Shown here: positions 2,906-59,970 of the stretch, one piece after another | Layout: each line of letters begins with the position of its first letter | Numbering within the stretch: the stretch's first letter is position 1 | Assembly: GCF_000002075.1 (NCBI RefSeq) | Contig: NW_004797359.1 | Span: forward strand, 388,347-452,346 | Reading direction: 5' to 3' | DNA: 64,000 nucleotides | From: Aplysia californica | Lineage: Eukaryota | The notes under the pieces: model-generated | Seen by the model: only the letters and a program-made list of their open reading frames with translations | What the model was told of the DNA's origin: nothing | The model's database searches: none | Position numbers and translations under genes: made by a program

Positions 2906-5900
2906 TAAAAAGGTATTGCAGGTTGCTTTGTTTGGGTTTTTTCCCAACCACAAAAAGATAAAGTTCATTTTCTTTCTGTCCTTCTCTTTTTCTCAAGCTA
3001 AATAAAATGATTGTAGTGCCATTGGTAGTGGAAACTTCCTCTGTTATTTGTTTCTGACTGACATTCCATGTCAACAGCCAAGCTCTGAACAGGTGAAGAA
3101 TACATCGAGTGATTTTGTGTATACTTTTGAAAAGATTGTGAGAAGTGTATAGGGAAAATTATACTGATTTTCTTGCATTTGTGTTGTGACTGATGCTATG
3201 TGTGGTTGTGTTACTTTTTTTGGTAACTGTGAGCATAACATAAAAGTTTTACTAGAATTATATTGTAAATCACAAAAATTATTCTTCTGCCTTCTGTACT
3301 TATAGCATTCCATAACGATATTTAGTAAATATGAAATTTTTATATTGGTTGTGACATTGCTGAGTGGCAAGAATTCCTATAATACTGGTAGATTTTTACT
3401 GTGCATGCCTTGAGTCATATCAAAAGTTACATTTTTTGTGGAATCAGCATTATTCCAGATTTTTCAATAAACTTATATTAAGAATTTATAATTTCCTGCC
3501 TGCTTACTTGTTTATTCTTTTGCTTCAGTATCAGAGTGTTGGTGGACTGCAGTGCATATGGCCTTGGTTCCGGCCTCTGTCAATACATACATATAAAAAT
3601 GGTTGTTTATGAAGGGAGTCTTCATGGCTTCTCACTCTCTAGTAGAGATGGGTCTCCTGTAACCTCATATCAAACCATGCTTATGATGGGCAAGTTTTGA
3701 TCTAGAATATATTTTTGTAGTCAAGGCTTAGAGTTATATCTTATTTTTTTATTTATTGGGTGGGGGTAATAGCTCTGAGCCATTGTTAGTGAACTTTTCA
3801 AACACAGTTGAAAGTGACTAGCACATTGAAGGATGTTGTCCTTTCCATGAAGCTGGTCATCTGATCTTTTCAATGATTGAGGTGACTATAATGTTACAAA
3901 ATAAGCCAGTGTGGAAAAGGTGAGTGCTGATTTATGGTTTGATGGTAAGATGTTTGCATGCCTTGTAAGTGTACGATGTACCTATCATCAAGGTCAGTCT
4001 CTCTCTCTCTTCATTTACACTATTTGATGATCATAACCTTTTATCCTTTGACACTAGATCTGTTGTATAATCCCATCATACAGCTTGAGACAATCTTGAT
4101 ATGGTCAGCTGAACGGTTAGGATGTGTCCTGTAAGTGTAATGAGAATGCCATGCTATCTATTTTATATCTCTTTGTTTCCTAATAGCAACATGTTGCCCG
4201 CATTCATATTACTGGGATTGAAGAACAGGAAACAGTTTAAAATGCTGGTAGTGACATGGCATGGAAGATTTCAAATTATTTTTGCAGAAGAAATAGGACA
4301 GTTCATCCATTTGTACTGTCTGTCATACCTTTGATTCTCATGGACACATGGACGCTTGATGGGTGTTTTTGTGTGATCAGCTTTTATTTCTTTTCCCGAT
4401 GTTACTACTGTCCTTCGTTTCTGGGATGTATAATTGTATTTCTGCCGTCTTGCCTTCAGAAAATCTTTTATCAGATTTGGTTTATACAATCTTGAAACTG
4501 TTACTGGGATCATAATGATATTTCATTCTCACCTTTGCTTTTTAAATAATATTAATATGATTTCTTTCCTTTCATTATGCTGACTGACAGTTCTTACGTT
4601 TGAGTTTCTCCCTCTTGGGTCATCTTCTATGTTGCATGTTCTTGTCTCTGTGTGCATGGTTCTTGTAATGAAGACATGTTAGAATTTAGTACCTTAGCAC
4701 ATTACGGCCTGATTGTTGGTCCTCTTGTCAAATCAGAGGATACCAAAAAAAAACTTATTTCAAGTTTCTTTTTTGTAGGAGTAGGGCTAGTAGGAGCAAA
4801 TAACTTGATGGTGGATGGATGCCTGCATCTTCCCCAGTTCCACTGTGTTTGTTGTATGCCCATTCTGTTGAGCCTTTCAATCTTTTCAGGCCATCGTCTG
4901 GTGTATTGGTTAGGCCCCTTGCATTTGAGTTCAATTCCTGAGTGAGCCAGTCTATTTTATTGAGCAGGCTATCACTTTCTTTTACCTGGGATGTATCCAT
5001 CTCAGCCCACATTGGTCCTGACAGGCAGGGGTGAAGCAGCCCACCCCTTAAATAATCTTATTGTTGTAGATAAGGGTATAAAACATTTACAATTAATTTC
5101 TCTTTTCAGGCCATAACTAGTAGTTAGAGGGTTTCACTGGCAGGTCCTTCATCTTTACCATACTTTTGTTGTTTTTGTATGTCTCTGGCTGTGCCCAAAA
5201 GACTTGAGTTCTATTCCCACACAGGAAACATAATTACTTTTGAATTTCTGGTTTTCCTCGGGGATTTAGTGTTAGTATCAATAGTATCATGCACAGCTGA
5301 GCTTATCAGCATCACATGGCATCAAATCAGCTTGCCTAGCAAATTATCTAAATTGTGTTGATGGGCTTGTACAATACTTACATTAAATTCAGGAACTGAA
5401 GACAGTGTCGGTGATGTCTTGAGCATCATCGGCAGCTTTATTCCACAATTGCTCAAATCATTTCTAGAGGTTTCCAGAGAAAACCATAATTTTAAATAAA
5501 GATTTAAAGGGCATCTTACAGTATGGATTCATTTTGTTTTGTAGTTGCCTTCCAAGTTTTTATTTGAAAAAATAACGAGGGTCAAAGTCATGTTTTTGAT
5601 TTGGGAGTAGTTTTATTTTCTTTGATTTTCTCAAAACTGCCTAAAGTGGCTTGCGCGCTTGAAGAATGATGGTGAAAATATCCTGGGATGTGCATATGCA
5701 CAGATACTTAGTCCAAAGTATGTCAGAAGGTGCTGATTGCAGTGATTTCCAGGAAATAATTGATATTGTGCTCTCTGTTAACACAGTCTCGCTCCTCTTT
5801 AGGTGCTGCATTTTAGCCTTTTGTAGTGATGTCAATCTTTTTTCATCTTGAAATTTGTCTTGACTTCCCTCTTCCAGTTGGCTGGGTGGTTGGAGGGCAC

Positions 5901-6875
5901 TACTGGGTAGGTCCTTCTTCTTTTCTGTTGATCTGTCGTTTGTCTATCTGTTTTGCTTCTTTCTTGCGCTATAGGACCCTTGTGTCGATGTGCTGCTCTT
6001 CACTCAAACTTTTCAATTGGTAAAGATCTACTGTTTGTTCCCAGGTTCTAATGTTGATATCTGTTGAAGTCATGTCCTTCTTACAAGCATGTTTGTAGAG
6101 ATCACCTTTTAGTATTCATTTCACTTTCCTTCTCTATGTCTTCATAGATGAAGACTTTATATTTTATCATCGTCATTCATAGAATGAAGGTGTCCCAACC
6201 TTATGAGTCCTTCATTTTGAGAAATGAAAATACCATTAAAATGTTCTGTCTTTTCAGTTCTGGTACTTTGTGTTTGTAATCTTGTTGGCCTTGTTATTCC
6301 ATAATAATTTGAGGCATCTCAAGTGAAAGCTGCTGAGCTTTTACTCCACTTTTGATTCAAAAATCATTTTCTTCAAGTCTCACTCAAGTACAGCAGTGTG
6401 CACTGTGCCACTATTGTTGAATAAAGATTAGAGTATGGAGCAGCTGGTGCCAACTTTTTACCCCACTATTTATTTTGAGTGTATGGTTGGTCAACATTTG
6501 GATGTGGCTGACTTTTGTTTCTTTTCTGTGCAGCTATCATCCCCTGAAGTTCAACTAATGCTGCTGTCTAGCTGACAGGCCATACCCGTCAACTTAACTA
6601 CAATCCATATGAGTCAAAACAAGTTTTCTGTGACTTATTGGTATAATTTTACTTTCAGGCACTGAGTTTTTGCCCTGATTCTCCACCGTTTTACTCTTTC
6701 AGGCACTGAGTTCATCACCTGGTGTTATGCAATTTATTCGTTCTTGTTGATTGTCCCAAATTTCCGTGTATAACCCTTGTTTCAATAAACTTCCTGATGT
6801 TCAAATCAGGAAAGAAGTTTATGGTAGACAATAGATTATGTAGTCTACATGGATTTTGCTTTCTGTTACCTGCAG

Positions 6876-7108
6876 GAAGAAGAAGAGAAAGAAGAGGAAG
6901 AGGATCAAGAAAATGAAAACTTGTCAGACGAGGATGAAAAAGCATCCACGTCATCCAAGACGAGTGTTGAAGATGTGAACTTCTACTTTCTGCCCTCGAG
7001 TCGAGGTTGTCAGTTGCTTGTGATAGAGGACTGCCTGCTGTACCAGAATGCAGTGAGGTCGTCAGGAAGATCCTACTGGAAGTGCCAGAAGGAAGGCTGT
7101 TTCTTCAG
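6876..7108 (+). CDS. FLYWCH gene exon: acidic stretch plus first half of finger 1
   Basis: tgcag|GAA...TTCAG|gtaatg; EEEEKEEE...[43 protein letters not shown]. Confidence 0.88.
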
Positions 7109-10073
7109 GTAATGGCCCACAGTAGTACATGTGACATGTGTTATGATTGTTTGAAAACAGCTGTATTGTGTATATCTCGTGTGTTTTTCCTACCAAAGAA
7201 AAAAAAGCAGTATTAACTCTTTGCCAATTCATATAAATGTCATGACGCTGTGGAATCAGGTGTTCGTCAGTTTTTGGACATATAGAGTTATTAATACTGT
7301 CTTAAAGTTTGTTTACTTGTCCTGCTTTTGGCGAAAAAAATCCCAATCTATCTTGAATTCGAGATATTTGCGTCGTTGCGTCATTTGCGTCCGATTCTTA
7401 GAAAAAATATTAAAAGTTCTGCAATCTCTTTTGCTTGGAAGCACCGATTGGACTTTTTATCGGCAGGAACTTGGAATGCTACTTTTTAAAGCATCTATGC
7501 CGAATCTAGTAGATGACTCACGCACGTTATTTTAACTAAAACCAACGTAGTATCGATTTTGAATTCCGACATGGATACGCTCAAGATGTACTTTCGCTTT
7601 TATAACACAGAATTCTCCGACTGTGTCCTGATTACTGTAACAATTATGTCATGGGCCTAAGAATAATCTATTTGTTGTTCTGCCGTTGGTTTAAAAGCAA
7701 GCTTCGTTTGAGTTCTGGCTAGTCGGGCCCATCAGCATGAGCAAGACCTGTCAGTGGAACTTTCAAACGCTCATTCGCAACCCGTGACATGACCTCGTAC
7801 GTGTGAATAGCGCGTGTGTCGGGGACCGTCGGCTGTCGGGGTCAGCAAAGTTCATTCACGCCGGTCGCATTGGTCGGGGTGTTTTTCGAGACTTCACCAG
7901 GACGACCGGGGGGAGCGGGTGGGGGTATTGTTTTGACACTTGGGCTTAAAGTGCGTGCCGTGATACAAGTAGAACCTACTAAGTGAGGATAAAGGAATAA
8001 GAAAAAAGAAATAAATGAACAACCTTGGCGCAATCTTTTTTTTCGGGGGGGGGGGGTGCCTTGAGTGTATATGCGATGGAAGTCAAACGTTGTTACTGTA
8101 TGAAAACACGGGCTTTTTGCATGGATGATTAGAGTTATGTGTCAGCTATTTTCAAGACTACAAGAGTTTCAGCTTTACTGCAACCTGCGCTCCCCCACTC
8201 TATCCCACTCCGACTCGAGTAATGTTGTCTTTCAGTTTTCCCTCTATTTAGTGGCCCAAACGTGAACTTATTCCTGCAAAAAGTTTTTTCTTGCATTTTT
8301 TCCTCATAAAAGGGAACCAGGATCCCCCTTCCCCTGTACCCCTTATGACTGATTTGCCGTTGATCCTGATTTTTTTCACCTGATCCTGATTTTTTAACTC
8401 TAAAATCCTGATTTTTAGATTCATAGAGTGGCAGGTCTGTATTATGCCTTCCTTTTGTCTCGCACCATCTTCTTGTGCTTATTTTTTCTCTTCATTAGAT
8501 TTTTTTACATGTTTACTTTATTTGAAAAGTCAGCTTGGGAATCTGGCGTTTCCTGGCGCCCGGTCCAACTTTTCACATTTTTGCAACACATTGGTATGAC
8601 AGAACAAAAGATGCTCCTCTGTTATAGAAAGAGTTATGTTGGAAAAACAGAAAACCAGCATTGAACTGAACCTTATAAAGGCAAATTGGGGCAGCTCTAT
8701 GGATTCACTTCTTACTTAATACTATATTTTTCTCTCTTGTTATGTCGGTAAAGGGAAACAAAAGTAATGCGGTAATTTATAAGATTAGATAACATTTATT
8801 GATCTACCATTGGAAAAAACAACTGATGATGCCCTCACCAGCTACTACGACACAAAGTGTACATATTATATANNNNNNNNNNNNNNNNNNNNNNNNNNNN
8901 NNNNNNNNNNNNNNNNNNNNNNNNNNNNNNNNNNNNNNNNNNNNNNNNNNNNNNNNNNNNNNNNNNNNNNNNNNNNNNNNNNNNNNNNNNNNNNNNNNNN
9001 NNNNNNNNNNNNNNNNNNNNNNNNNNNNNNNNNCAGTATTCATCACAATTTGTTTTCACCTTCAGGGCGGTGTACGATTCCCCGAGGAATTCTGTGATCA
9101 AGACGACAGGCCTGCACAACCACCCGCCAGATGTGGACCTTATGATGAAGAGACAGTTTATTCAGAATGTCAAGCACAGGATACTGGAGAACCCCCACGT
9201 CCCAGCCAAAAAAATCTATGACGAGGAGGTGGAGAAGGTGAAACAAGAGGTAAATAGAAGGGTAAATGTTGTTCACCTAGCTGGGTTTTTTTTTTTCATG
9301 TTGCATATTCCCCTCATGTGGGACACAGCTGCCTGGAGCTAGAGAAGATCGTCTAGTACAGAGACAGGCTGAGAGCTCTTCTTGGCATCTTGTACCTAAT
9401 ATTAGGGTGAAAGAGGTGAATGATGGTATTCCTTTTAGAAAGTAGCCTCCTTGATTGTTCTTTGAAAGCATTTCTGCCCACTGCACAAAGCCGCCACCCC
9501 TGGTGACAGTGTCTCATTGTCTTCAGTTGTTAGTGATGTCCTAATTCCCATCTTCTTTTTAAGGGCATTCTGTGTTAGTAATTGTTCCTTAAAACATGTC
9601 TTTTTTTTTCCAAACTTTTGTGTATTCTTATGAGGCCTAAGTATTTTTGTTGTTGTTGTTCTGAATGTATCAAGGTGTCAGTTTACTTTTAGCTGGTCAG
9701 TGTTGTTCTTTGTCTGGTCAACATAGCTGGCCAATATCTCATATTGATGTGAGTTGTACCATTGTAGTTCACGGCAAGTTGGAGCAATAACGACTCTGGA
9801 TCACTAGAACCATCTCCTGAGTTCTCTGGCTTGGTCCATGGGTTGCTGACTGTTTGTTCTTCCTACTACTAGGAAAATTTTTTTTTTTCAGTCATAGTTA
9901 TAGTAGTAGTAGGAGGAGCTGTAGTTGTACTCACTGTACCTTTTGACAAAAGTTTAGTACAGTTTTTATGTCCCTCACCACACCAAATTGTGCTCAGTTG
10001 ATTTTCTTCATTTTTTTTCCTTTTTGTCTTTTGCTCTTTTTTTTTGACGACTCCCCCCCCACACACACATGCG

Positions 10074-10134
<61 letters not shown>

Positions 10135-13100
10135 CTTCTTTTTTTTTTATGCCTTTAGGTCTCTCCAGCAGATTTTTTTCTTCTGATTTGAATTGTATTC
10201 ACTGTTTTCTCTGCCTGTACCATTTTTTGGTGCTCTTTGAACCTTTATGTCTTAATGACAGACCAGTCTGCCACCATTTGAAAATGAACTGGACAAACTC
10301 TGAGGTAAACATGAATAATAAAAAAAAAAGTAATTGTTTATGTCCCTTAGAATTAGAGGGCAAATATTTATTCTTTATTCCTGCTGGTGGATGAACAATC
10401 ACAACAAGAACAACAACAACCTCATGCTCACAGAATTTTTCTCCTGTCCTCTCTGCACAGGGTGATCTTCTGGGTGTGACTCGAAAAGTACCAGGCTATA
10501 GTTGTATCAAGCACTATGTCTACCGCATGAGGAAGACCATGTCTGTCTCTGAGGATGCTGAGGAGGATGAAGAAGAAGAGATTGGAAAGGGAGAGGTAGA
10601 ATGTTTGTTCCCTTTGTGAAACAAAATGTGAAATGGTATAGGTTTCACGTTCCTATCAACACCATTACTATTAGATTACATAATGTGTGTGACCTCTGAG
10701 TTCAATATTATCTCTGAAAGGACTGAGCCAAATAGAAAATTCATGTAAAGTGTCTTTCCCAAGGTCACATCGGACCAAACTGAGATTCGAACCCCAGAAC
10801 CCGCAATCTCACGATTATGGGTCTGTTAACATAATCACTAGGCTACCAATGTAGGCTACCAATGCCGCCGTTCCCTCTGTTGGCATAGTAATTTTAGTTC
10901 CAGCTTAAAAAAAGAAAGAAAAGAAATCCTACTCTTTGTCCTTTTCGGAAATTTGTTTCACTGGGTCATGTGCAGCTGTATTCAGATCTGTCAATATCAT
11001 GTTGGGAGGAATTCCATAACGAGTGACCACTATGAAACAGAGTAGGATAGAGGGTTTAGGGTAAGAGTAGGGGTTGGGGGTAGGGTTAGGTCTTTTTTAA
11101 ATTGTATTTGTTAAAGTAGTCGCTCGTTACGAAAGTCCTTCCATCATATTAATGTTATGCTTATATATCAAGTAAACAGACTTATCTCTGCAAACACACA
11201 TTGCTCGTCATAGTATCTTGTATTACAGAACCTGATCAATTCATGTCAGTTTGGTTAATGGAAAGATTCAATAGGTCTGAGTATATCTTTGGAAGTTGAG
11301 ATAGGGGTGTGACCACTCTAAATGCTTCCTGATGTACACATCTTTAAGAAAAAAAATGTATAGTGAATAACTCTGTTAAGCCAATTTGTGAATGTTTGTC
11401 TGTACGAGTGGTTAATATGACAGGGTTGTTTATTTCTATTAGTTTTAAAGAGCACTTTACTCTGCTCAACTTTGAAAAAATTGTTGTTTTCTTTTGGTCT
11501 TGTACCATTTAGCATTTCAGCAATGTCATGTATATCAATCACCTGAAACAGTTTGACTAATTTGTAAAACAATGTTTAGAGGGACAGTGAAAAGAGTACA
11601 TTGATCTAACACAGGAGAAAAGGCGAGAAATCACGGAGCTGGATAGAGTATTCCTTGAGGAGTCTGCCCCGTCGTCACAGCAGGAAGAGAGCTGTATGAA
11701 CATGTCGATCATCACGCCAACGCCCATCAGGTCCAGCAAGTTCCCAGAGCTCAGCTTTTATTTTATCCCGTCCAAGCAAGGTACTGTTCCATAATTAATC
11801 ACCCTTATTTGAAACTGGGCCTTTTAGAGCAATATACAAGATTCATAAATGTTTCTTTTAATATTTTGTGTCTTTTTTTGTTGAAATTATAAATTATTTC
11901 TAGTCTCCAGAAGTCTCTTTTGGCATTTAATCTATGTAAGCTATTTATGTCTTTTTGTTGATCTAAAAATATTTTGTATTGCCTGACTTTTTACAAGCCA
12001 TGCTTGGGGAATTGAATCAAATTATTTCTCTGGCATCTGTCCTGTTGCAGTTAACATCATGTTGTAATATACATAAATTTGATCAGTTTCTGGGCATTGC
12101 TCCTCAAATAGTAGTTTTATTATCAAAATAGTGTTTATAACTAGTATCAGTGGTGTCTTCATCCTCGTAATGTAACTTACTTTTAAATCTGCTGTTTTAT
12201 CATCACCAAAAAAGTATTTCTCAAAGAATCGTCATCAAATTGTGACACCTCAATTGCTAAAATATTTGTACTGATGGGCATGAGCAAAAGAAAAACACTT
12301 TTTCCAACATATAAAAAATCGTCATTTGATATTGCTATATTTTCTCAACTAAGGTAATTATAGCCCAGTTTCTCTGAATCTCCTTCTGTTACTTATTGTA
12401 CTTGTTTATCATATCTGCAGTGGACTTTCTACATTCTTAAATACAAAGAAAGGTAAATTACTGTATTTTTACGTACTTTTGTGCCTCTCAGGTAAAAGGA
12501 TCTTTGTGGTGAATGACTTCACATTGCGCCTGAATGCTCAGAAGACCGGAGGCCGCTTTTATTGGAAGTGCACTGTCGATCCATGCTTGTATCGCTGCGT
12601 GTATAACGATGTCTTAAATGACATTGTCAAGGTAAGATCCTGTTGAATATGCTCTATTCGAAAATATGTGTACATCTTTTTTTGTTTTTGCTTTTGATTG
12701 GCAGCAGTGTTTACTTATGAATTTTGCATAATTACTTGTTGGTTGTTCTCAGTGCTTTTGAGTAAAAAATGTCAATTCTTTCCCTCTGTCTGTGAAGCTA
12801 TATCATAGGTTGTATCTTATTCTGACTCTCTTGTTATGTTGATCACAGATAGTTTACATTTGCAGAGGAAAGTACAAGTGAGGGGGGGGGGGAACCCTTG
12901 GGGGGCTCTCGCGGCCTAGAGGTTAAGGTGTTGGCTTCTCATTCAAAGGTCCAGGGTGCAAATCTGGGTAGTGACCGAAAATTTTCTTCTCTAAAATTGT
13001 CTCTTTTCACTTCCTTTCCTGCTTTTGTCTCCTCTTTCTGCCCCCAGCCCCTCACCTCCTTTGCCCCCTCCTCTGGGCTCCTGGCTGTTTCTGCAGCTTT

Positions 13101-16100
13101 TCTATTGCTACTCCTTGGCTCCTTCTTACTGCTGTTTTTCAGCCACCCCCCCTGATCTTCTGGTAGGAAAGATCTACACCTAGCTTTGTCAGACAAGGGC
13201 GAAAAATCTCGGAGGGCCTGTGTGCAAGTTGGGCTTGATAATGATCGTTTGGTGGTGTAAGATTGAAAAGAGTAGGCGTTGGCTGCCACCCGGGCAAAAT
13301 AAAAAATTTCCTACTGGTTGAAAAATGTTTAATGTATCCTGCGCGCTCATATGACCTTATGCAGTAGCGAGCACCGTAAAACACTTACCAACCCTCCCCC
13401 AACCCCTTTATAGACCTTATGAATTGGTAAAAGCCTGTGTACTTTAATCAGGGTTGAGCGATATATATATATGCCATATATTATTATTATAAGAGAGTAG
13501 GACCTAACTATTTGGTTTTTGCAAGAAAATCTGTGTTCGAGGATGAATATCATTGCTGTAAGGGAAATGTGGCCAACAATTCATTTGTGTTAAAATTTGT
13601 TAACACATTACACCCTAAGGGCCTGGACGGGAAGTCCATTGTTAGATCCTAAGCAAGGGGAAAGAACCCACCTCCCGTGAATACTAGCCTTTAAAAAACA
13701 CATTTTAAAAATACTAAACAAATTCCAAAAATCCTGAAAAATATAAAAGTTAAAAAGAAAACTGAATGTAGTTTCAGAAAAATATAACTTTATGTATGCG
13801 CAAACTGTTGGAAATGTTCTAACTTTAGTTCAATCGGGGTGTCCGACCAGTCACTCTCACTCTCAGCCTCGCGGTCGGGCCCTAGGTCTAAATTCTAGAT
13901 TTTCTCCGTCTGATCAATCGGAATCGCCCCAAACTCTTCCTACAACGTTTTCATCAAAATCTGAGCCATCTGATTTGTCACATGCTCATTTTTGCTCAAA
14001 TCCATCGTTATTTCCGTTTTCGAACTCAATTGTGTCGCTTTTCAACAAGTCGAGACACTTTCGAAGTGTCGGTAACGCGATCGCACTTCGATCAGCTCTA
14101 ATACTAAAACTACTGGCCCGAAAAATTTCGTTTCGGTATCAAACGAAAGAAGAAACTTTTTGCTATACTATGCAAATCAAAATCCCGGCCCCAGAGTCTC
14201 GTCAAGGCGAGACTTTCGTTTCTAAAGACGCTGGGTCGGCGCGGGCGGTTCCGGGCGAGTCAGGGTGGAGCGCGTAAGGGAATTCCCGGGCGATCCCGGG
14301 CGAGTTAGGGTGTAATGTGTTAACAAATGTTATGCAGGTTGTTCAAACTACAGAAGTTAAAGGTGTGTGTGTGTTTGTTTACAAGAAAATATCATTTAAT
14401 GAGAGATGTTAAAAAAAATTATTTTTGCACAAGTGTTCTGCTGTTAATACGAATGCAAAACAAAATTAGTTCTTAAAGAAAAGAACATTATTTAGACTGA
14501 AAGGCTTGGATGAAAAGAACCCTTTTAAAAAGTGGAACAATAAGTAATATAAGAGGAATTCTTTTTTTGCTCCCTCTAGGTTTCAGGCAAGCACACCCAT
14601 GTGAGCAATGCGCATAGACTTCGAATTCGTGAATTCAGTTACTTGTTGAAAGCGAGAATGTCCAAGGACCCGACCTTGACCCCCAAGCGAGTGTATGACC
14701 AGGAGATTGCCAAACTGCGAAGCATGGAGAAGGGAGAGCAGCTCGTGAAGTGTCTACCTGCTTTCTCCAGCGTGCGGACGTCTCTCTATAACTACAAGCA
14801 CAAGTGAGTACATTGTGATGGTTCGGTCACCTCTTGCATTTGTCTTGTTGTGATAGGGAAGCTTCTGAACTCTTTCCCCAACAGTAGGTGTTCCCCATTT
14901 TTACGCAGCCTGTTTGTAGATTCTCAAGGTGTGTTTGCAAAATACAGCAATCACTTTGACAAATATTTACCAAAATGGATTGTTGACCCCTCAAACTATA
15001 GTAAATTGAACGGATAAGATAATCATGAAACATGTGTATTGTAGAATGTGCATAGAAATGATTATGAGAAATGAAAATTGGAATAAGTGATTAGTAAGAA
15101 GGCAACATGTAGTGGTAATATGAAAGTAAGGGGCACTTCCGTTTCACCACTTGAAGTGGCAAGCGGGGGGGGGGGGGGGGGGGGGGTTTGGGAGAATGCG
15201 TTGAACGAGACCAAGGAATTTTCTAAATTGGGTTTCACCTCTTTTCCCGGAGCATCACTCCCTTCCCAACATTTCCTAGCTGAAGATAAAGGTAATTTTA
15301 TCGAAGCAGCTATGTAGCCCTATAAGGTTACTACTTTTTCAGAAATTTTAGTTCTAAAAATTCTGTACTCATTGTTTCATAAATGATGGTGTTGTCCTCT
15401 GCTTTGCCAAATTTAGAATGTCATCTTTGTTACTTGCTGGTGGCAGGTGTTAACAATGGTATGGAGAAATATCTGAAACTGGTTTAAAAACTGATTGTGA
15501 CTTTTCATAGATGGAGCCTATGCAACAGCTTGGTCTGATGGAGAAAATGTGCTATTTTCTTAACGTAAAAAAAAAGATGATTATTATATAGGGTTTATCG
15601 TCATGTAGGGCAGACATTTTACAGTTTTTAATGGTCTAGGATTACTGCACTGTGACATTGTACTTGTTTATTCAATAAAAATTCAGACTGGATATGATAA
15701 CTCTTTTTTTTTTTTAAGGTCTTTGTATTTATTACAAGAAGCGATCTATGAGCTGATATAAAATAGTAATTTATGATAACAGAATGTTTTGATAGAGTTC
15801 ATTTTCTTACTCAAATGTAGTTTTTATACACTTTATGATTAATATAACTAAAATGTATGGCAAAGGCAAATTTATTGTTAGGTGAGCTCAAATGAATGCG
15901 AACATTTTGTGTCACAGAAAAACCCAACCCGAAGAGACGGTGAGCAGTAAGAGAGGTGCCACGTACTTCACCAATGACTTCACAGTCGAAGGGCAGGAAA
16001 CTGTTGGCACATCCAGGGGGCTCGGTGATGTGAACATTGATGGCACACAGGACATCTCACCTAAAGATTTAACAGTAATATTTTACAAACACTCTTAGTG

Positions 16101-19100
16101 ATAAGAGACCTTAATTGAGTAAAAATTATTTTTCATTTATTAAATTGAACTTTTTAAGTCTCTGAAAAATTTTTTTTTTAAATTTTGATATCGTATGCTA
16201 TGAACATTTTCTTGTACAATATTAATGAGCTGAAAAAGAAAGAATATGAGGATTGCAAATCTTAACTTTTTAATGGTTATTGTACTACCTTTCTGATAAC
16301 CACACTCTTAAACTTTTTGTGGCCAAAATTCTTCGAGAGAATTTACTATGAGTTTCTTGAACAGTAAACATTTATAGGTTCTACAGTTCAATTATTATAC
16401 TGAATGATGTTATCAGCTGTGCAAGATTTGTGCATGGCATACTGAACCCCCCCCCAAAAAAACAAAACCAAAAAAAAAAAAAGAAACAAAAAATGTTTTA
16501 GTATACTAATGTTTAAGATTAGAGAGAGTAAAAGATCTTGCAGTTAAAATTTGAAACTATTAATATTCATTACATGTATTTGTACAAGTTTAGTCATAGC
16601 TCTCCATAGATCAAAATATTTTCATTTCGATGTACTTTTTTTGTTGAAAATGTGGATTGAATGAATTGAACAAGATAAGCTATTACTGAGATTATATCAA
16701 CCAAATTCTCTTATAATTGTTGTCACTGTACGTCTGCAGCACCTGAGCCTCGAGGACAACGACCCCATGGACCAGGATGCTGAGGAGAACGATGAGGCCT
16801 CCCCGGACCGCAGCAGCAGCAGCAGCAGCGGCAGCAACGCTTTGATGGACATCGCCGCTCCAAGCCTCTATGATAGCCATGACATCATCGACCAGTATTG
16901 TAATGCTACAGTGAAGGTCAAGGTCAGTAGTTCAGGGGGCTGCTATCATTTGCTTAAAAAAAAATCAAAATAAATCATTTCAGCTGTTTGGAAAGTTTGC
17001 CTTTCTCAGCCAGGAAAATGGCTTTGCTGTACTGTCCTTGTATGTAAAGCCCATGGAAACAATGCTTTAACGTAATTGTCAGGCTGAAAAAAATTAATTT
17101 CTGACTGGTGTCAGAGTCAGAGATAGTAAATTTTTAACCAGCATTAATGCATTCATAGTTCTCATATTTTAGCTGTGTTGGAGCTATTTTTGCTGGTTTG
17201 TCTTCTTGCGAGTGAACTTCTTACAGAAGCTATAAAAATTTCATTTTAGCTGATATCAGTTATGTTCACTTTCTATTTAAATAGTTCAAGCTGTATTTAA
17301 TTGATCTTTTTAAGTGAAAGTTTCCTTTTAACTTGTTGCCAAATGCACATTTCATCTATTTTACTTGCGGAAACCAGGTGAATGTTTGAATTCAGTTGTG
17401 TGCTTCAAGTGTAGGGTCCCCCACCCCCAACTCTCTCACTGATGGTATTTTCAATGTTTCAAATTGACACAATCACAAAGTTTCCTGTACACGCTCCGTC
17501 CTTTGCAGGGTCACTTTTTATCTGTATTTGTTATTAAGTGGAGCACTCTACACAACTTGTGTCCTCAGACGTCAACTGCCAAGATAACTCCACTGGAGGA
17601 ACCAGAACATTTGGTGATTTCCCTGCCAGACCCGGCCAGCTACAGCATCTCGTTTGTGCCCACAAATCGTGGCAGTCGTGCACTGGTGGTCAACGGCTGT
17701 GTCCTGCGGATCAGCTACACGCGCGAGTACACCACCTACTGGCGCTGCAAGAACAGCAACTGCAGCTTCCGCTGTAGCTACGACAGCAAGTCCAAGAGGT
17801 TGATGAGGATCAGCGGGGAGCACAACCACCCCGTCAACGCCTTCAGTCTGGCTGTGAAGAACTTTGTGCGCAAAATGAAGAAGAGGTGATTTCGTATTTC
17901 AGGATTTACTGTCGTGCCACTGGTATGAGCAAATCTCTAAATTTTGGCTGATTGACGTAACAGCTGCCTGCGTTTTCAGTCAATAAATCTTTTATGCTTT
18001 TCTGAGGGGTTGACATGCGGGTTATGCGTTTGCCTGATTTTTCCCTGAAAAAATGCAGTGCCGTCCATTGTTGCGGAGAGTGGTTGTCTTAGACAGGTAT
18101 ATTTCTTGGACAGTGTCATTATAATATATCGAAAAAGATGTGAGGTGAGAAGCGGTCATTTGTACAAGTGATTGTCTTGGACTGGTGGTCATTAAAGTAA
18201 GTTCAACTGTACATGGTCAGATGCCTTCTGCAAAATGAGTCATGTCTTCGGCAGGCGACCAACCAATATGTTTTCGAATATCCCCATTTCCCCACCGTAG
18301 ATGAATCCCATGTAGTCCAGACTTGTGGTAAGAAGTTTGTAGAAGCGACTGTTTTCTTATTTATAATTATATCCCTGTGTCAATGAGGATGTAAAACCTT
18401 TCTTTACTCTGTTCTTCCTGGTGTATCGTTAGATGTGAAAGGGAGGTGCATTTTTCAGTCAAGGGCGAGGTGGGTGGCTTCTGTTGTTTGTATGCTATTT
18501 TTTGTGGGGATTTCTTTAACAGATGAGGATGTAAAATATTCACCACGAAAATCGCATTTACTCTTATTTTTTGTCTGTGTCCAGGGTGAGCATTGAGAGT
18601 GACCTGTCGCCCAAGATCATCTATGACGAGGAGATTGCACGTCTCAAGTCAGAAGGAAAAGACAGCGAGTTCCTTTCCAAGCTTCCCAACTACGAGAGCC
18701 TCAAGTCCACACTCTATAAGGTCAAGAGCTTGTCCAGCCGCTCGGCCAACCTCATTGAGGACCAGCTGGACGCAGCCGCTTTAGATGACTCGGAGGTTTG
18801 TTCGGCATGGACATATGCATGCACACACACTCACACACACACACACACACACATACACACACACACACACACACACAAGTGTTGACGGGAGCATAAAAAC
18901 ACTGACTTTAAACATTGATGTTTAGCCAAAAAACAAAAATTCAATAAAAGTTGCCAAACAAGCAAAAAAATATAGGTTTACTTGATTTCATTATTTTGAC
19001 GAGCGTCTTAATTTCACCATGCTGCCTCACAAATATAGACTACTGCTAAACCAGTTGGAGCTGCATTCTATCTAATGGTTGTAATACTTGCAGTGGCATT

Positions 19101-22100
19101 TAAACACAGATGAATCGGATGAAATAAAAATTCACTTTGATGATTTATCCTTCCTTTTTTTCTTTCTTTTTTGGGGGGGGGGGGGGGGGGGGGTGTTGGT
19201 CCTTTTCTTTAACCTCAAGGCTGAGTACTGTGCCTTCTAAATTACCTGTTAGTGTTGAGTAGCGTGTTATGCTCATACTATAACATACAATTTACAGATT
19301 AGGGGTTTCAAAATTATCTTATAAAGGGGGGGAACTGATTTTTTATAGAAACCAAAGGAAAAAAGGCTGGGGGGGGGGGGGGGGGGTGTGGAGTCTGGAA
19401 TAATATATACTTAATGACTTGGTTAAGCGAACAAAGCTGGAAATAATCAGAATATTTGCCTTTTTATGTTAATTGTCAGATAAAACATATAAAGCATTTT
19501 CTCTATTTTTCTTTTCAGGTTGATAATGTTGGGAATAATGACAATGGTATCACTGTTTTTTTCCTTTTTCTGCCCCTTTACTTCTCGTAGGGTGATGAAA
19601 GCAGTGAGCTGGCTTTGGATGCAAAGGGGAGCAACTTTGACTTTGACCTCGACGACCCTCCTTACGATATCGAGATTGAGTCAGCTTACACTCAACTCAC
19701 CGCGCTGTTGCCATCGTGGTTGGACCCTGACCCAGACAAAAGGATTCTGGATGGTCATCCACTGGTGAAGAAGAGCGAGAGTGAGACGAGTACTGGGTGG
19801 GCGTGTGTCCGGGAGGGCTGTCCCTTCCGCTGTGTGGTGGACCGAGAGACAGAGCATGTGACGCGCAGCCAGCTTGACCACACACACCGGCCCGACGTCA
19901 AGTACCACGTGTCACAGGCTCTGATTGCTGCGGTCAGGAGACGGGCGGTCATGGACGTGACATTGTCGCCGAAACTCATCTACGAACAAGAGAAGAGGAG
20001 AATGGAGAAAATTGTCTCCGGTAACAAAATGTTGCTAAAGTTCTTGCCCAATCTGACCAAAATCTACCAGCTTGTGATGAGGACGCGAGCGAACCCACCA
20101 CAGCCAGCTAAACAAAAGTTGCTGCTTAAGTCAAAGTCACACAAAGATATAGGAGGTAAGAAGAGCTTAGGGTCGCTGAACGAGCCCGACAGCACCATCC
20201 CCAGCTGCAGCAGCAGCAGTAACAACAGTACCAGCAGCACAATAAGCAGCACCAGCAGCAGTGGTGTGACAGCCGCAGACTATCTCATCGAGCAGTGCCA
20301 TGAGGAGACGGAGAGAATCAGCTCTTACCTTGACTCCCGGGAACAACACATGAAGTCGCAGCGGAGTGCCGAGCCGCACCACATCTTGTTTGAGCCGGAC
20401 ACTGTGACCAACCTACCTCAGCTCCTGCAGACCCCAGAGAGCAGTTATACTACGCAATATCCTCAGCAGACATCCTTCCAGCAAATCGGGACCACAAATT
20501 ACACAAATATAGTACCTAGTCAGTGTACCTCTCTACAACAAAATTCTTTCACTTCTATGGACCGGCAAATCGGTTTCAACACCTTCAGTGGTCACCAGGA
20601 GAAAAATTCTCAATTTCCATCTGTTTCTGTGTATACTCAGTTGCCATCACAACAACATTCTCAACAGCTGCTGACCGTAAGTGACCCACAGTCTGAACAG
20701 CCACAGCCGCAGCAGCTCCCATTGACAGTGTCCACAAATCTACAGCAAATCTCGGTCCCCTCCATGGTCTCTGGCTCGACGTCCTCAATTCTCCAGCAGG
20801 CCATGCTTCCCTCTCCAACACCCACATCCCACAGCAGCGAGAATGTGTTCACCCTACATGGCTACCCTCTCATGCCAGCCACCGCACAGATCGGCAATGT
20901 GTACTGGCAGTGCCGTATCCCCAGCTGCCCGTTCCAGTGTGTGCTCAACGCCTCCACCTCCCAGGTGGTACAAATCTCCAGCAATCACAACCACGACCCG
21001 CCAGGCTCACAGTCTGCCTTTGCTTCACAGGTTAGCAACTGTGCACTACCTCAGAATTTCGAAGCTCTATCTGCTCAGTACCTAGTTTTCAGAAATTTGA
21101 CATAAAACAATTTTGAGTTTCACATATTACAAGCTTTTTCAAATGTAATTTGAATATCTTGATAACGACTCAAAATAATCTTATGGTTTTGATAGAGCAG
21201 ATAGAGCTTATAATTTCTGACCTCATGGTGCTAGAGTAAAGGCACTATTTGCGGCCGGCCGAAGTATGCGGCCACTTTCCTTATAAAGTCAATAACTCAA
21301 GTCTTGTTTCATTTTCCATACGGAAACCAAGCTCCCGTGATGCACTGGCATGAATCACATGCTCACAACAGAGATGGTCTCGATAGGCAGCAAAGTTTGA
21401 AAGCGGCAGTGGTTTGAAGAATTTGGTCGATCAAAATATCAATGTGTGAAAATTTGACTGGTCACTTGTCCATGGTCATTACAAAGCTTTCTTATCACAT
21501 TTTTATTTGATTATAGGTTCATGTGTTTCTGTAATGAATGAATATCATGTGTAAATGTCTTAATATAAAGAAAACAACAAAGGGGACTCAGGGAGGGGGT
21601 GGCCGCATAGTCATTCTCTTATTTTTGAAAAGGACTTCTTGCAATCAGGGACGTCCACAAAAGGTCCACTCCATTGGAGAAGGGGCATTGTTGGGGTCAA
21701 TTACTAACAGTGCCCATTTAACAGCATTTTAGGTTACATGCACCAGAAAGCCTGATTTGTAGTTCTTGACTTCAATGCGATAGTAGATCAATCAAGACTG
21801 ACTCCATCAGATTGGGCGCAGTCTGAAGAAACTGCCCTGTCACTTCCTCTTGAAAAAAATCTGCGAGTCCCGGGAATTTGGGGAAATCTGTAAATTGCCT
21901 CAGGAAGTTCATTTCTGCTGGTCGCGATTGAGTTATTCGCTCAGTTTTTCCCGATCTGATAATGAAACGTTTGTGGCATGCAAGTTATGAATTCTATACG
22001 CTGTGTCACCGTTAAAATAAATCAATATTTGTGACTAGTCACTTAAGAAAAAAGAAAAGAAAAGAAAACGTCTTATTTTCAGCTTATTGGGCTCGCCGAC

Positions 22101-25100
22101 ATGACCGGTCAGTGAACCTGCGCGTGCTCGCATCACATGTCATCATGTGAGTAGAATCTACGTTTGCAGGGGTCACCAAAGTTCATTCAAAGCCTGAGCG
22201 TTGCTGAGTATTGGACACCGAAGTGGGGGCAGAATTATTGATTTTTTAAAAAGATACACTCGGGTCGTTTGTGAAGGTGTCTGTCAAAGTTCCTGGCAGT
22301 ATTTACGTATTCATTGATTTTTTAATCTGTCAAAGTTGTTTTTTGTCGTCAATGTAACAAGAGCCGATCATCGTTAAGCTTCTTATTTCGTTCTCACTAA
22401 CCTCACCTGTTTCTCCCATGACTTCTTTCTTTGTTGCTTGCTTTACCGAGACTGAGTTGGTAGTTTAATCGTCTCTTTCGACACAGGAAGGTCATATAAC
22501 TTATAGGAGACGGCCGCTCTGGCCATATCACTCAGGAAAAATGCGGGCCCAGCAAGACTCGAACCCGGGATCTTCAACATATGAAGCGTGTGTCTTACCA
22601 CTACGCCACAGTGACTCCTGTTGTTTATTTTATAGCACCCTACTGTACATAGATGGTCATTTTGAAGGCGGATCACTTGATCTCACCAGAGGACGCCGAG
22701 GGGGGGAGGGGGGGGGGCAATAAAAAGCCAAAGCTCAAGAGTATCATACTGTCGGGATTCCAACCTTTTGGCCAAAGTCCGTCAACGACGAGGCCACCCT
22801 GTCGGCTCGTCTTCTTAAAAAACACCCCCGCCCCACGGTACACTACAAGATCATGTTGGGAGGTCCTGGTCGTGTACATATCCCCATGTGATCGCATCAC
22901 AATTCCCTAGCCGCATAATGTGTCCTCGATGACCGCATAAAGGTGCCCTGATCGCAAACTGGTCCCTTCACATGGTGTTTTAGAATGAATATTCTTCTTG
23001 GCAATCTAGCTGAGTATGCTCTAGACCATAACACATCTATTGGCCAGAGGATGTGCAAGTTTGAAGGCCAAAAATATTTTAGTTATCTCTATTCGTTTGG
23101 TTTCTAGAGCAAATTAAGTGAGAAATGGCCACAAATAGTGCCTTTACTCTAGTAACTCAAAACAGTAAAAAATGTCAGAACTTTGTAATTTTTAGGTAGC
23201 GAGTTAGTGCTTAGTTCTTTTCCTACCAGGCCAAAATCCACCACTGGCCCAGGGCTTTTCCCTGACCTATTTTTACACCTCTACCCCGCCAAAGGAAAAT
23301 GTCAAAACATCCAACTAAACACGCACAAACCATATCATATGGCCCATCAAACTGAAGGTTAAAAAATAATCTATCAGATGGCGATACAATATTGAAGATT
23401 TATTCCAATTATATTACTTTGTGGTTTCTAAAAGTGATTATGCAATATCGAAGGTTTCATATGAAATCAACAATTTTCCAGCTTTGAAAGGTCATAACTA
23501 AAAAAGTACAACAACATCATCATTGAAACTTCCCAGGTAGGTTGCCACAAGTAATGCAAAGAAATACTGAAAGTTATGTATTTGTATCTATTATAGAAGT
23601 GAAAGTCTGAGACGTATACTAAAGTCAGGGGAGCGCTTTTTCCCCTCATATTTGCGTTTCGAATGGGACAAAAAAAGCGCTGAAATGACTAAAAATCGTC
23701 TGTCAGTGCAATATTTTCTTTTGTATTTGCTAACAGGAAGTCTATTCCATTATTTTGAAAATGTGGATCGGCCGAGAATTTTGTATCTTTTCATTACTGG
23801 ATTGGAGTAGATAACGAGCCACTCGAGCCGTATTTTGCGGCTCTCGGTCCTGCGAGGCCAGTTCTGTGAGCTGCAAAAGCTTGTGGTAGGGAAAGAGTTA
23901 AGAGGCAACAGAAAGTAGTGTTTTCATCGTGCTGGGGTACAGTCATGATTGATTATAGTCGAGTGGTAAGGCTTATGTTTGATATGACTTGCAATTTTGA
24001 AAAGTAATTTAGTTGAGTGTTAGGCCTATGATTGATATGATTTGCAATTTGTAAAAGTTGTGAGTTAATCTCTCAACTCCTTACTATAGGATATTGTATC
24101 CCTAGTGGGAAAGTTACTTTGTGTAATTCCTTCAGTTTCCTCAGCTGTGAATAGATACTTGGCAGTCAGTGGGACAATATGAATAGTAACAACAAGCACT
24201 CAACAGGTACAACATTGTATATCTCTTGGGGGATAGAAATGGTAGATTGGAATGAAGAAATAACCAGAAATGTCAAGGGAGATATTGCGAAGTTGGGTGA
24301 GCTGCTTTCTTTTAGGATATGTGACTAAAAATAAATATTTTAATATAATACTTTAAAGTAGCTTTTCATTCCTCTGGAACCTGGTATGGTTATGTGATAC
24401 CTCTTTAATTCAAAACTCAACTTTATGCTCTACCACACTGCGTTGACTAGCTTATGTGCTTTGACAGAAAGCACAGAAATAAAGTGGCATGATAATGTGA
24501 GATGTATCTATCATAAAGTGACAGGGAGCAGCTTTTTATTCCATGTGTGCTTTTTTCCAGGTAGTGAAAATGTTACAGCGTAGATCTGCAGAGACCTTGG
24601 ACCAGTCACTAGTCTCTGTCTACTCTGACTATGTCCGATGCCTGAGGAATGTCCTCGACTCTGATGAAATTCTCAGCTGTGTGCCCAGATTTCAGGACGT
24701 GGCTCAGTCCATGCAGAATGCCAGGACTGCGATGGTCACAGACAGTGCTTCTCAGAACCTTATTCTAGAGGTAAAATACAACATACCTTTCTTTTCCTGG
24801 GTATAATTATAATACTAATAATGATAATAATAATAGTAATAATAATTATAATAATAATACAGTGGAATCCTGTTTTAACGAGATGGAGGGGACCGGTGCG
24901 AAATGTCCGTTATAGCAGGATTCTCGTTATAAGGGATCCAGTAATAAATTCAACGGAAATAGTAAAGTAGGCCTAATCTATGAGCTTGGTGTTCTGTTTA
25001 TTCCTTTTTGTATTTCCCCTGATGATGATTTTGTTCAACATGATCTCTACATCTTACATGATCAAAAATCAAATCAGGTTTCTTTCTCTAGCACTAGCAA

Positions 25101-26622
25101 TGTTGACAGCTCGACGCTGGAGATCAGAAAGAAAGGGCTCTGGCTCTAGGCTAATTCGCCGGCTGTGTTGTCCCCCACCCCACCACTCCCTGTTGTGCGT
25201 TGCGTCTTCTTGCGCGCGTCACACATTCACTCCATCCATCACAGCACTGTGACCTCTCCGTCCCGCACCGGAGAAGTGAGAGGCACAGTATGCCTAGATA
25301 ATCTAGCAGTATTTTATTTACAAAGATATAGAAGGAAAAAAACGGGGTTTTAGAATAGTGTCTTTATAACAGACTTCTCGTTATTTCTGGACTCGTTATA
25401 AGTGGACTCCACTGTAATAATAATAAGAGTTTGTCCATCATGAACTGATGATTACCTTTAACATCGGAAGAGGAAGAGAAGTTTTAAACAAACTTAAGCA
25501 GCTACTGGAGGTAGCTTATATTTTTATAGAAGCAATCTTCTCAACGTATTTTGTTGAACACCACTTTTGCTTTTGATTTCCCCTCACAAATACTTGATTC
25601 TTTGTGCTTGTTGGAGGTCCATATTTATTTGAAAGCAGCTTACATACACTATACTTTGATCCTTCCATCTGAAAGGGCTGACCCAGAAAATCCACCACTG
25701 TTCCTGAACATGGTTTGATAGTTCTTGTCAAATTTGTGTTGAAAACTACTTTCTCTTTTTTTGTTGACAAACTCACGTGCAAGTTTGCTTTCATTGTTTT
25801 CGTCTGTCTTACCTTTTTCCTGCACTGAGTGACGGTTATTATGTTGATGTGTTTCTCTTTATTCAAGCTCGTGTTTATGTTTTGTCTTGTACTTGCTCTC
25901 AGACTCAGCAGGTCTTACAACTGGCCGGCACTAGCAATCAAGGCACCAGCCTGAGCCCACCAGCCCCTGGTAGCGTGATGGACTTTCACTTTGACAGTCA
26001 GAGCAACTGCCTGGTGGTGTGTGGGGAGCAGCTTCTGCTCAGCTGGACAATGAACGAGGTCTCCTACTGGAGGTGCCGCCGGCCAGACTGCAGGTAGGGC
26101 CCAGTGCAACGTTTGTAAGTGGTTGGTTGGTGGGTGCTCTGGTGTGGTTTGCTCCTTTTCTTTCCTGTCAAACATCCATCGTCCTTGTCTCTCCTTATCT
26201 TTTTGGGTTTGTGACTCTCTTGTAACACCTCTAATTTTTTACACTTAAATTATGACATAATTTGTTGCTAGTGCCGAAATGCTTTTTAAAACAAATATCT
26301 TTACTAAAAATTAAGTGTTTATAAAGAAGTTTAGGGACCCGGACCTCTAGCAAATTGCACAATTTGTTCTCATTTCCGTTGACTGTTACTGGTTACTGTC
26401 ATTGTTTTCTCTGATTTGTTTTCCTACAGATTCAAATGTGTCTATGATGAGGAACAGCAGTGCGTGCACCTGATGAACTGCCATACGCTCCCCTGTCCAG
26501 CCACATCACGCGAGGACGACCGGTGTTCTGCCGCCAAACGCAAGCTCTCGGAGAAGTCCCTGGCCAGGAGGGCAAAGTTCCCACGTCTTGACAGCGCAAA
26601 GTTGGAGGGTCACATGACCTAG
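6876..26622 (+). CDS. Multi-FLYWCH zinc-finger protein (six modules), 5'-incomplete, 14 exons
   Basis: Exons 6876-7108, 9066-9249, 10461-10595, 11615-11780, 12492-12631, 14580-14803, 15918-15939 (or -16074), 16740-16922, 17569-17885, 18585-18795, 19591-21030, 24561-24770, 25903-26093, 26430-26622. All junctions are AG/GT and phase-compatible, giving one open frame of about 1282 aa (1327 with the long exon 7) ending TAG. Motif (Y/G)WxC-x4-C...HxH occurs 5 times plus a degenerate sixth. Start codon not identified. Confidence 0.88.
8873..9033. other. Assembly gap
   Basis: N run; second gap at 61436-61629. Confidence 1.
9066..9249 (+). CDS. FLYWCH gene exon: finger 1 HNH plus helical segment
   Basis: ttcag|G...GAG|gtaaat; [22 protein letters not shown]...[14 protein letters not shown]. 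Confidence 0.88.
10061..10131. repeat. (CA)n microsatellite
   Basis: Direct reading; similar tracts at 18822-18876, 28027-28110, 61630-61745. Confidence 0.95.
10461..10595 (+). CDS. FLYWCH gene exon: end of module 1
   Basis: gcacag|GGT...GAG|gtagaa; [25 protein letters not shown]...IGKGE (not in ORF track). Confidence 0.85.
11004..11142. mobile_element. 139-bp MITE with G-rich TTAGGG-like core
   Basis: About 27-bp imperfect TIRs (GGGAGGAATTCCATAACGAGTGACCAC), 8-bp TSD ATCATGTT/ATCATATT. Confidence 0.65.
11615..11780 (+). CDS. FLYWCH gene exon: linker and start of module 2
   Basis: acacag|GAG...CAAG|gtactg; [12 protein letters not shown]...FYFIPSKQ. Confidence 0.85.
12492..12631 (+). CDS. 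FLYWCH gene exon: finger 2
   Basis: ctctcag|GT...AAG|gtaaga; [47 protein letters not shown]. Confidence 0.88.
12900..13382 (+). mobile_element. tRNA-headed SINE (family B) with central domain resembling molluscan MESC/Meta SINEs
   Basis: A box GCGGCCTAGAGG, degenerate B box, pyrimidine tract, conserved body, same LINE-type tail; second copy at 40419-40940. Confidence 0.8.
13604..14319. mobile_element. TTAA-flanked MITE (piggyBac-like)
   Basis: TIR CACATTACACCCTAA/TTAGGGTGTAATGTG; TTAA both sides. Confidence 0.85.
14580..14803 (+). CDS. FLYWCH gene exon: finger 2 HTH plus helical segment
   Basis: ctctag|GTT...AA|gtgagt; [13 protein letters not shown]...PKRVYDQE...[16 protein letters not shown]. 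Confidence 0.88.
15918..15939 (+). CDS. FLYWCH gene 22-nt micro-exon (alternative in-frame donor at 16074)
   Basis: tcacag|A AAA ACC CAA CCC GAA GAG ACG|gtgagc; needed to convert phase 2 to phase 0 between flanking exons. Confidence 0.7.
16740..16922 (+). CDS. FLYWCH gene exon: acidic/Ser-rich linker
   Basis: ctgcag|CAC...AAG|gtcagt; [19 protein letters not shown]...NATVKVK. Confidence 0.82.
17569..17885 (+). CDS. FLYWCH gene exon: finger 3
   Basis: cctcag|ACG...AG|gtgatt; [15 protein letters not shown]...[13 protein letters not shown]...GEHNHP. Confidence 0.88.
18585..18795 (+). CDS. FLYWCH gene exon: module 3 helical segment
   Basis: gtccag|G...GAG|gtttgt; [16 protein letters not shown]...[15 protein letters not shown]. 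Confidence 0.87.
19591..21030 (+). CDS. FLYWCH gene large exon: module 4, S/Q/T-rich region, finger 5
   Basis: tcgtag|GGT...CAG|gttagc; contains [16 protein letters not shown] and [16 protein letters not shown]; matches the 496-aa ORF. Confidence 0.9.
21235..23148. mobile_element. 1.9-kb non-autonomous TIR element, superfamily unclear
   Basis: 22-bp TIR AGTAAAGGCACTATTTG(C/T)GGCC, both ends flanked by CTAG. Confidence 0.8.
22542..22617 (-). pseudogene. tRNA-like sequence (pseudogene or SINE head) inside the 21235-23148 element
   Basis: A box TGGCGTAGTGG, B box GGTTCGAGTC, CAT at anticodon position, TTTTT downstream; stems pair poorly. Confidence 0.6.
24561..24770 (+). CDS. FLYWCH gene exon: module 5 helical segment
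   Basis: ttccag|GTA...GAG|gtaaaa; [11 protein letters not shown]...[17 protein letters not shown]. Confidence 0.83.
24860..25414. mobile_element. Tc1/mariner-pogo type MITE inserted in (TAA)n
   Basis: TA|CAGTGGAATCC...GGACTCCACTG|TA. Confidence 0.8.
25903..26093 (+). CDS. FLYWCH gene exon: finger 6 first half
   Basis: ctctcag|ACT...AG|gtaggg; [29 protein letters not shown]. Confidence 0.83.
26430..26622 (+). CDS. FLYWCH gene terminal exon with basic NLS-like patch
   Basis: ctacag|A TTC AAA TGT...; [22 protein letters not shown]...[14 protein letters not shown]...MT*. Confidence 0.83.
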
Positions 26623-29825: not shown

Positions 29826-30315
29826 TTAAGGAGGCAACACCTTTGCCACGGTACTACAGGGACCTGGCGGGTCGTCAATGAGTTCAGGAGGCAACACCTT
29901 TGCCACGGCACTACAGGGACCTGGCGGGTCGTCAATGAGTTCAGGAGGCAACACCTTTGCCACGGTACTACAGGGACCTGGCGGGTCGTCAATGAGTTAA
30001 GGAGGCAACACCTTTGCCACGGTACTACAGGGACCTGGCGGGTCGTCAATGAGTTCAGGAGGCAACACCTTTGCCACGGTACTACAGGGACCTGGCGGGT
30101 CGTCAATGAGTTAAGGAGGCAACACCTTTGCCACGGTACTACAGGGACCTGGCGGGTCGTCAATGAGTTAAGGAGGCAACACCTTTGCCACGGTACTACA
30201 GGGACCTGGCGGGTCGTCAATGAGTTAAGGAGGCAACACCTTTGCCACGGTACTACAGGGACCTGGCGGGTCGTCAATGAGTTCAGGAGGCAACACCTTT
30301 GCCACCGTACTACAA
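29809..30315. repeat. 57-bp minisatellite, about 9 copies
   Basis: Unit ggaggcaacacctttgccacggtactacagggacctggcgggtcgtcaatgagtt(a/c)a starting at 29830, 29887 ... 30286; no spacers. Confidence 0.97.
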
Positions 30316-30355
30316 GATTGCCTTTCTTGTTAATTGTTTACTTTCTCGCGGTTAA

Positions 30356-59652: not shown

Positions 59653-59970
59653 GTAAGTCCTGTGAGTTGAAAAGGGTTTTTTATTTGTGTGGTGTACCGA
59701 ACGCTCGATACTGATTCGTTATCCGTGAGTGCTGAGGTTCGGGGTCCGCTGGCAGTTCACTTCAGTATAGCGGGGGGGGGGGGGGAGGGGGGGGGGGGGG
59801 GACACAGTACAGTGGCATTCGGACTCAACGAAGTCGTTGGGCCTGACCTTCAATTTAGTTGAATCCGAATGTTAGGTAGAGCAAAGATAAGGTTTTTGTG
59901 TAAATAATTACAGGCACCGAGCAAGTATAGATCTAGATCATGTTATTATTCGACTTCCTCAACCAAAACA

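Follow-up and report, generated by a model that had tools for sequence, protein, structure and literature searches.

The window (the whole 64,000-nucleotide stretch of Aplysia californica DNA that was analysed) contains 14 exons of LOC101859393, a gene whose protein product, XP_005094823.1 (1584 aa), is uncharacterised and maps at full identity to these 14 exons plus one upstream exon, U1. All 14 window exons have AG acceptors and GT donors, remain in frame, and when joined give 3984 nt (1327 codons plus stop; 0 internal stops), bearing out the phase-consistent 14-exon open reading frame proposed in the initial annotation. That annotation had also described six modules in a gene spanning 6876–26622. 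Six W-x-C-x4-C motifs do lie in the window (followed by HxH in five of the six), but the exon at 6876 is internal and lacks a start codon, and a search of the genome with window exon 9 gave one more strong match approximately 10 kb upstream. This match is U1 (G000:C89:378248-379018), which begins with ATG and carries a complete module, bringing the total to seven and placing the start of the gene about 10 kb upstream of the window. A module profile built from exon pieces retrieved XP_005094823.1 with seven matches, and the gene carrying U1 was found in a single copy by genome search.

Gene structure of the long isoform

On the forward strand, the first window exon (6876–7108; exon 2 of the long isoform) encodes an acidic linker and the N-terminal half of the module 2 finger, with an acceptor that joins U1 at phase 0. 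The C-terminal half of this finger and the first helices are encoded at 9066–9249, and the last helix of module 2 and an acidic linker at 10461–10595. Module 3 is distributed over exons for a linker and the start of the module (11615–11780), the finger core (12492–12631), and the HxH and helical bundle (14580–14803), after which follow a linker exon (15918–16074) and a second linker exon (16740–16922) with two short motifs that are invariant in all eight proteins compared and are possible partner-binding sites. The module 4 FLYWCH finger and first helix (17569–17885; PF04500, E 5.7e-9) precede the exon for its helical bundle (18585–18795). The large exon (19591–21030) encodes the complete module 5, a Ser/Gln-rich linker, and the module 6 finger, while the helical bundle of module 6 (24561–24770) is diverged and not basic. 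Module 7, consisting of a finger only, is divided between 25903–26093 (N-terminal half) and the last exon (26430–26622; C-terminal half, a conserved basic patch, and the stop codon).

An assembly gap (8873–9033) lies inside the intron 7108–9066 and ends 32 bases before the acceptor of window exon 2 at 9066. The junction across the gap (window exons 1/2, aa 335) is phase-consistent, and its position in the protein is unchanged in six orthologues, all of which lack any additional exon at this intron, so the gap poses no threat to the gene model and an assembly artefact was rejected. The large exon is present in 18 sequencing runs guessed or unlabelled as RNA, and the long isoform as a whole (U1 plus the 14 window exons) is predicted from gene models.

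The Pfam FLYWCH family (PF04500) matched window exons 1, 5, 9 and 11 when each was searched separately; exons 9, 11, and U1 each pass on their own. Across XP_005094823.1, PF04500 was the sole Pfam family matched (120.3 bits over 5 stretches), with none of the accessory domains FLYWCH_N, GST or BTB.

Sequence and predicted fold of the modules

The repeat unit is a WRKY-fold zinc finger followed by a small helical bundle (~130 aa), of which Pfam covers only half. The W-x-C-x4-C...HxH ligands are kept in modules 1–6 in all orthologue models in which the finger is covered. Amongst themselves, the seven Aplysia modules are 20–37% identical. The predicted structure of module 3 (pLDDT 93.8) consists of the antiparallel finger sheet and then four helices, and its best match in the Atlas was a FLYWCH-MULE cluster (129/137 residues, TM 0.70), with clusters of FLYWCH1 and BTB-FLYWCH proteins ranking below it and covering only ~85–90 residues. 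In a PDB search, the best matches of the finger part were FLYWCH1 (2RPR, Z 7.5) and WRKY domains; the helical bundle gave weak matches to transposase and paired-box helix-turn-helix domains (Z ~5).

The modules depart from the full unit towards the C-terminus. In module 6 the PKxxY motif is missing and the basic character of modules 1–5 is much reduced, and module 7 has a variant zinc-ligand pattern and lacks the helical bundle. The last module in the window had been read as degenerate, but it does not reflect random decay: module 7 is 52–61% identical to its orthologues, retains invariant residues (W1513, C1515, C1520, H1534, H1539, C1543), and amounts to a conserved finger without a helical bundle. 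The basic patch noted at the C-terminus is present, with K1557–K1559, K1563, and K1570 invariant among orthologues.

Charge and homology suggest that the modules bind DNA. Based on the zinc ligands, the basic residues, the invariant C-terminal patch, and the kinship of the FLYWCH fold, we take both products of the locus (see below) to be candidate nuclear DNA-binding regulators. The array may instead be mainly a protein scaffold in insulator or chromatin architecture, like Mod(mdg4), that does not itself read DNA sequence. Some FLYWCH domains act via proteins rather than DNA, and the FLYWCH isoforms of Mod(mdg4) have been described as depending on DNA-binding partners for their action (PMC3169594); modules 6 and 7 have no basic character, and the short invariant linker motifs also suggest partner binding. 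We consider this scaffold role unlikely, as each of modules 1–5 has 21–25 Lys/Arg and an intact set of four zinc ligands, a DNA motif has been obtained for human FLYWCH1 (PMC13538051), and PEB-1, in the work as cited by a second paper, requires its FLYWCH motif for DNA binding (PMC1702500).

Conservation, synteny and selection

Full-length orthologues (47–51% identity) were found in Lymnaea, Physella, Biomphalaria, Candidula, Bulinus, and Bradybaena, and share module order and intron positions with Aplysia; the first exon is missing from the Bulinus model, and one additional small exon is present in two of the orthologue models. A more distant orthologue on an ENA contig (38–54% identity) has the same exon breaks. 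Between species, modules 1–6 are 56–75% identical and the linkers ~18–52%. Simple codon counts between orthologue pairs, where dS was unsaturated, gave dN/dS values of 0.13 for U1, 0.014–0.05 for the C2H2 exon described below, and 0.15–0.27 for the large exon. In the window and in all six other species, CDKN3 is located downstream, in the opposite orientation. The upstream neighbour in Physella and Candidula is a GST gene, and upstream synteny is not conserved; approximately 33 kb upstream of the window in Aplysia there is a MYND-finger exon resembling EGLN1/PHD2.

The proposal in the initial annotation that this is a real host gene thus holds on orthology, synteny, and purifying selection, with its suggested check of the CDKN3 neighbourhood giving CDKN3 downstream in the six other species. 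Its description as possibly lineage-specific was too narrow: the gene is an old, single-copy, 1:1 host gene across sea hares and pulmonates under purifying selection. These two lineages split roughly 250 million years ago. Consistent with its having been regarded as unnamed, no named orthologue was found, nor any name for the locus in the literature searched. No orthologue outside sea hares and pulmonates was identified among the named matches, and the whole protein found gastropod proteins only, which is weak evidence of absence. Two metagenome scans returned no relative of the long form, only unrelated C2H2 matches (32–34%).

In a survey covering Aplysia, Mutator-derived FLYWCH genes are described as species-specific, without homologues in related snails, and two Aplysia FLYWCH genes are listed, Ac_FLYWCH1 and Ac_FLYWCH2 (PMC10027918, Mukherjee and Moroz). 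LOC101859393, which is old, syntenic, and constrained by purifying selection in both sea hares and pulmonates, is a counter-example to this view.

A conserved C2H2 terminal exon in the first intron

Two further exons lie between U1 and the window: U2 (C89:384010-384273), which is short and acidic, and a C2H2 terminal exon (C89:385886-386602), whose seven zinc fingers comprise five of the C2H2 type and two that end in Cys; this exon includes a stop codon and has a polyadenylation-like hexamer on its 3′ side. The junctions of U1, U2, and the C2H2 exon in Aplysia are all phase 0. The same order (U1, U2, C2H2 exon, FLYWCH exons) occurs in Bradybaena, Candidula, Lymnaea, Physella, and Biomphalaria, and the Bulinus locus, fetched over a span that does not reach U1, runs from U2 through the C2H2 exon to the FLYWCH exons, its annotation including a FLYWCH-C2H2 gene. 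The C2H2 exon is 81–97% identical between species, including Aplysia, which is above any module. A conserved seven-finger terminal exon in the first intron of all seven species is the new observation here; like the seventh module, it was absent from the initial annotation.

A 2027-nt JGI contig, contiguous and representing a spliced transcript of a relative, encodes the U1-U2-C2H2 combination, as do Biomphalaria gene models. Together with the long-form models, this suggests that two alternative DNA-binding proteins are probably produced from one locus; a choice between alternative last exons would be the simplest reading, and exon order, phases, and gene models in seven species are compatible with it. 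The competing account is that there are two adjacent genes, the first combining FLYWCH and C2H2 fingers and the second having six modules and its own, so far unseen first exon, and that the joined models are annotation fusions. Two assemblies (one Biomphalaria and Bulinus) do annotate the locus in this way, and the sole spliced transcript found corresponds to the short form. Against this, U1 is connected to the following FLYWCH exon, through one shared phase-0 junction, in six annotations (Aplysia, Physella, Lymnaea, Candidula, Bradybaena, and a second Biomphalaria model), Bradybaena has models both with and without U2, and the exon at 6876, having no start codon, is preceded in the window (1–6875) by no conserved alternative first exon, such that two genes seem quite unlikely.

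Origin of the module

The FLYWCH finger has the DNA-binding fold of the WRKY-GCM1 group and originated in MULE transposases (PMC1702500). In many proteins, residues 1–130 match the module profile and a MULE core follows from about residue 170–230 on. A profile of the helical part only also matches MULE-core proteins (iE down to 4e-9 to 5e-11), these being proteins preselected by the whole-module profile. When the host helical profile was compared using hhalign to the segment after the finger in transposon-like Aplysia ORFs, chosen by FLYWCH family alone, the match was significant (E 5.9e-6, score 30.7) relative to 40 column shuffles of the profile (score at most 16.9). A helical-only HMM built from the Aplysia modules alone had no significant match to the Aplysia transposon ORFs (best E ~0.05). 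The MULE/DDE core (PF10551) had no match in XP_005094823.1 or its orthologues. These profile results and the fold match of module 3 support a derivation of the module, helical part included, from the N-terminus of a FLYWCH-MULE (Phantom) transposase, an origin that had been proposed from the sequence alone along with the missing catalytic domain. An active or decayed transposon was rejected as an explanation for the locus, given the lack of a catalytic core, the single copy, and the fixed position beside CDKN3 in seven species.

The initial annotation had envisaged repeated capture of the transposase N-terminus, and in this respect the data point the other way. For the profiles of modules 1–5, the sibling modules outscore each of 112 outside modules, while for modules 6 and 7 the difference is marginal, outside modules scoring about as well as siblings. 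Two trees placed modules 1–6 on one side of a branch (91/76; SH-aLRT 82), neither at starred support, and the N-termini of Aplysia transposons formed a separate starred clade apart from the host modules. Since the host modules are closer to one another than to any transposase sampled and group together, one capture followed by internal duplication is favoured with moderate confidence over repeated capture. Exon shuffling of an intron-bounded unit is unlikely, as no two modules share an intron position.

It is very unlikely that the long protein is, as also suggested initially, a transposon repressor that binds Mutator terminal repeats and was assembled through repeated captures of different transposase ends. 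The genome does contain many FLYWCH-MULE elements (though none on contig C89 among the 37 matches listed), the modules retain the transposase part expected to bind such ends, and Mod(mdg4) FLYWCH variants are reported to repress a retrotransposon (PMC9723646). However, modules 1–5 are closer to their siblings than to any outside module, the Aplysia transposon N-termini stand far from them in their own clade, and purifying selection holds the number, order, and sequence of the modules constant in all species, which is not the pattern of an arms-race gene.

Comparison with known systems

Mutator-derived FLYWCH transcription factors are already known, and LOC101859393 is not a new class of system. 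Each module matches the first 130 residues (finger and helical segment) of FLYWCH-MULE transposases of the Phantom/Muta1 type, from which the gene differs in having no MULE/DDE core, seven copies of the unit, 14 conserved introns, and a single-copy, syntenic position. Human FLYWCH1 (five FLYWCH fingers; PDB 2RPR) similarly has tandem Mutator-derived fingers in a host protein, but FLYWCH1 clusters align to the module over ~85–90 residues (TM 0.53–0.55), without the full helical bundle, and there is no sign of orthology, as modules and neighbours differ. Insect GFZF (FLYWCH x4 + GST; P0086) also combines several FLYWCH fingers in one host protein; unlike the snail protein, it has a GST domain, and the module profile matches its finger part only. 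In lola-type loci, a constant 5′ part is spliced to alternative 3′ exons encoding zinc fingers. The same arrangement, with a constant 5′ part and alternative 3′ exons for different zinc-finger domains, is found in Drosophila mod(mdg4) (PMC1702500). The snail locus differs from both in that the constant part is itself a transposase module, with no BTB domain, that there are only two apparent alternatives (the C2H2 exon or the 14-exon array), and that nothing suggests trans-splicing. By analogy, the gene may work like FLYWCH1, PEB-1 or GFZF, with splicing that resembles mod(mdg4), while being an orthologue of none of them; orthology to FLYWCH1, GFZF or Mod(mdg4) was rejected for lack of shared accessory domains or any best-match relation.

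Arrays of four to seven finger-plus-helix modules were also found in Littorina (XP_070180617; P0011), the insects Condylostylus (XP_055383237) and Phthorimaea (KAI5646691), and an ENA sequence (P0025). Unlike the orthologues above, each of these forms its own clade, which indicates that they arose independently and that the architecture is recurrent. The Littorina protein carries four recently duplicated modules and ends in an array of C2H2 fingers, a pairing of these domain types that was reached by convergence; orthology to it was rejected on its separate clade and the 25% identity of its C2H2 fingers to the C2H2 exon. ENA P0025 (L081:235-4020), a 1261-aa ORF uninterrupted by introns, encodes four of these modules in tandem and, behind them, a MULE core in which the acidic catalytic residues, judged by eye, look altered; it appears to be an independent intermediate between transposase and array.

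Proposed evolution and function

Overall, we assign a probability of about 0.65 to LOC101859393 being a euthyneuran host gene that arose from the capture of a single transposase module and makes two isoforms, both nuclear DNA- or chromatin-binding regulators, with different targets. A single capture event would have brought in the N-terminal region of a FLYWCH-type Mutator (Phantom) transposase but not its DDE core. Internal duplication would have raised the number of copies to seven before the separation of sea hares and pulmonates, and the copies would have diverged to their present low identity. The first exon, with module 1, would be shared by both products: a short one (~580 aa) spliced from U1 to U2 to the C2H2 terminal exon, and a long one (1584 aa) in which the C2H2 exon is skipped and U1 is joined to the 14 window exons. 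Each product would have its own DNA target sites. Being basic, modules 1–5 most likely read DNA in the major groove as in WRKY and FLYWCH1, and the acidic and Ser/Gln-rich linkers may act as effector regions.

A broader proposal, to which we give somewhat less than even odds, is that, at a locus conserved across sea hares and pulmonates, regulated choice of the last exon switches the captured module between seven C2H2-type fingers and six more modules, yielding two transcription factors that have different targets in different cell types, and that tandem amplification of the entire MULE finger-plus-helix unit represents a recurrent and undescribed route to new animal transcription factors. Such a candidate isoform switch between two DNA-binding arrays is testable in laboratory snails (Aplysia, Lymnaea, and Biomphalaria).

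Other features of the window

Just 3′ of the gene, a piggyBac-like transposase ORF with a zf-Tnp_2 domain lies on the reverse strand (28186–29508; PF13843, E 1e-18), followed by a 57-bp minisatellite (~29750–30330; approximately nine copies, 96–98% identity). CDKN3 exons occupy ~43834–51570 on the reverse strand, and there is a MEA1-like exon (weak Pfam match, E 0.13) at 59215–59667 on the forward strand. Translations also indicate a broken DNA-transposase-like relic (37370–38430, forward strand) and a broken non-LTR reverse-transcriptase relic (55500–57970, reverse strand).
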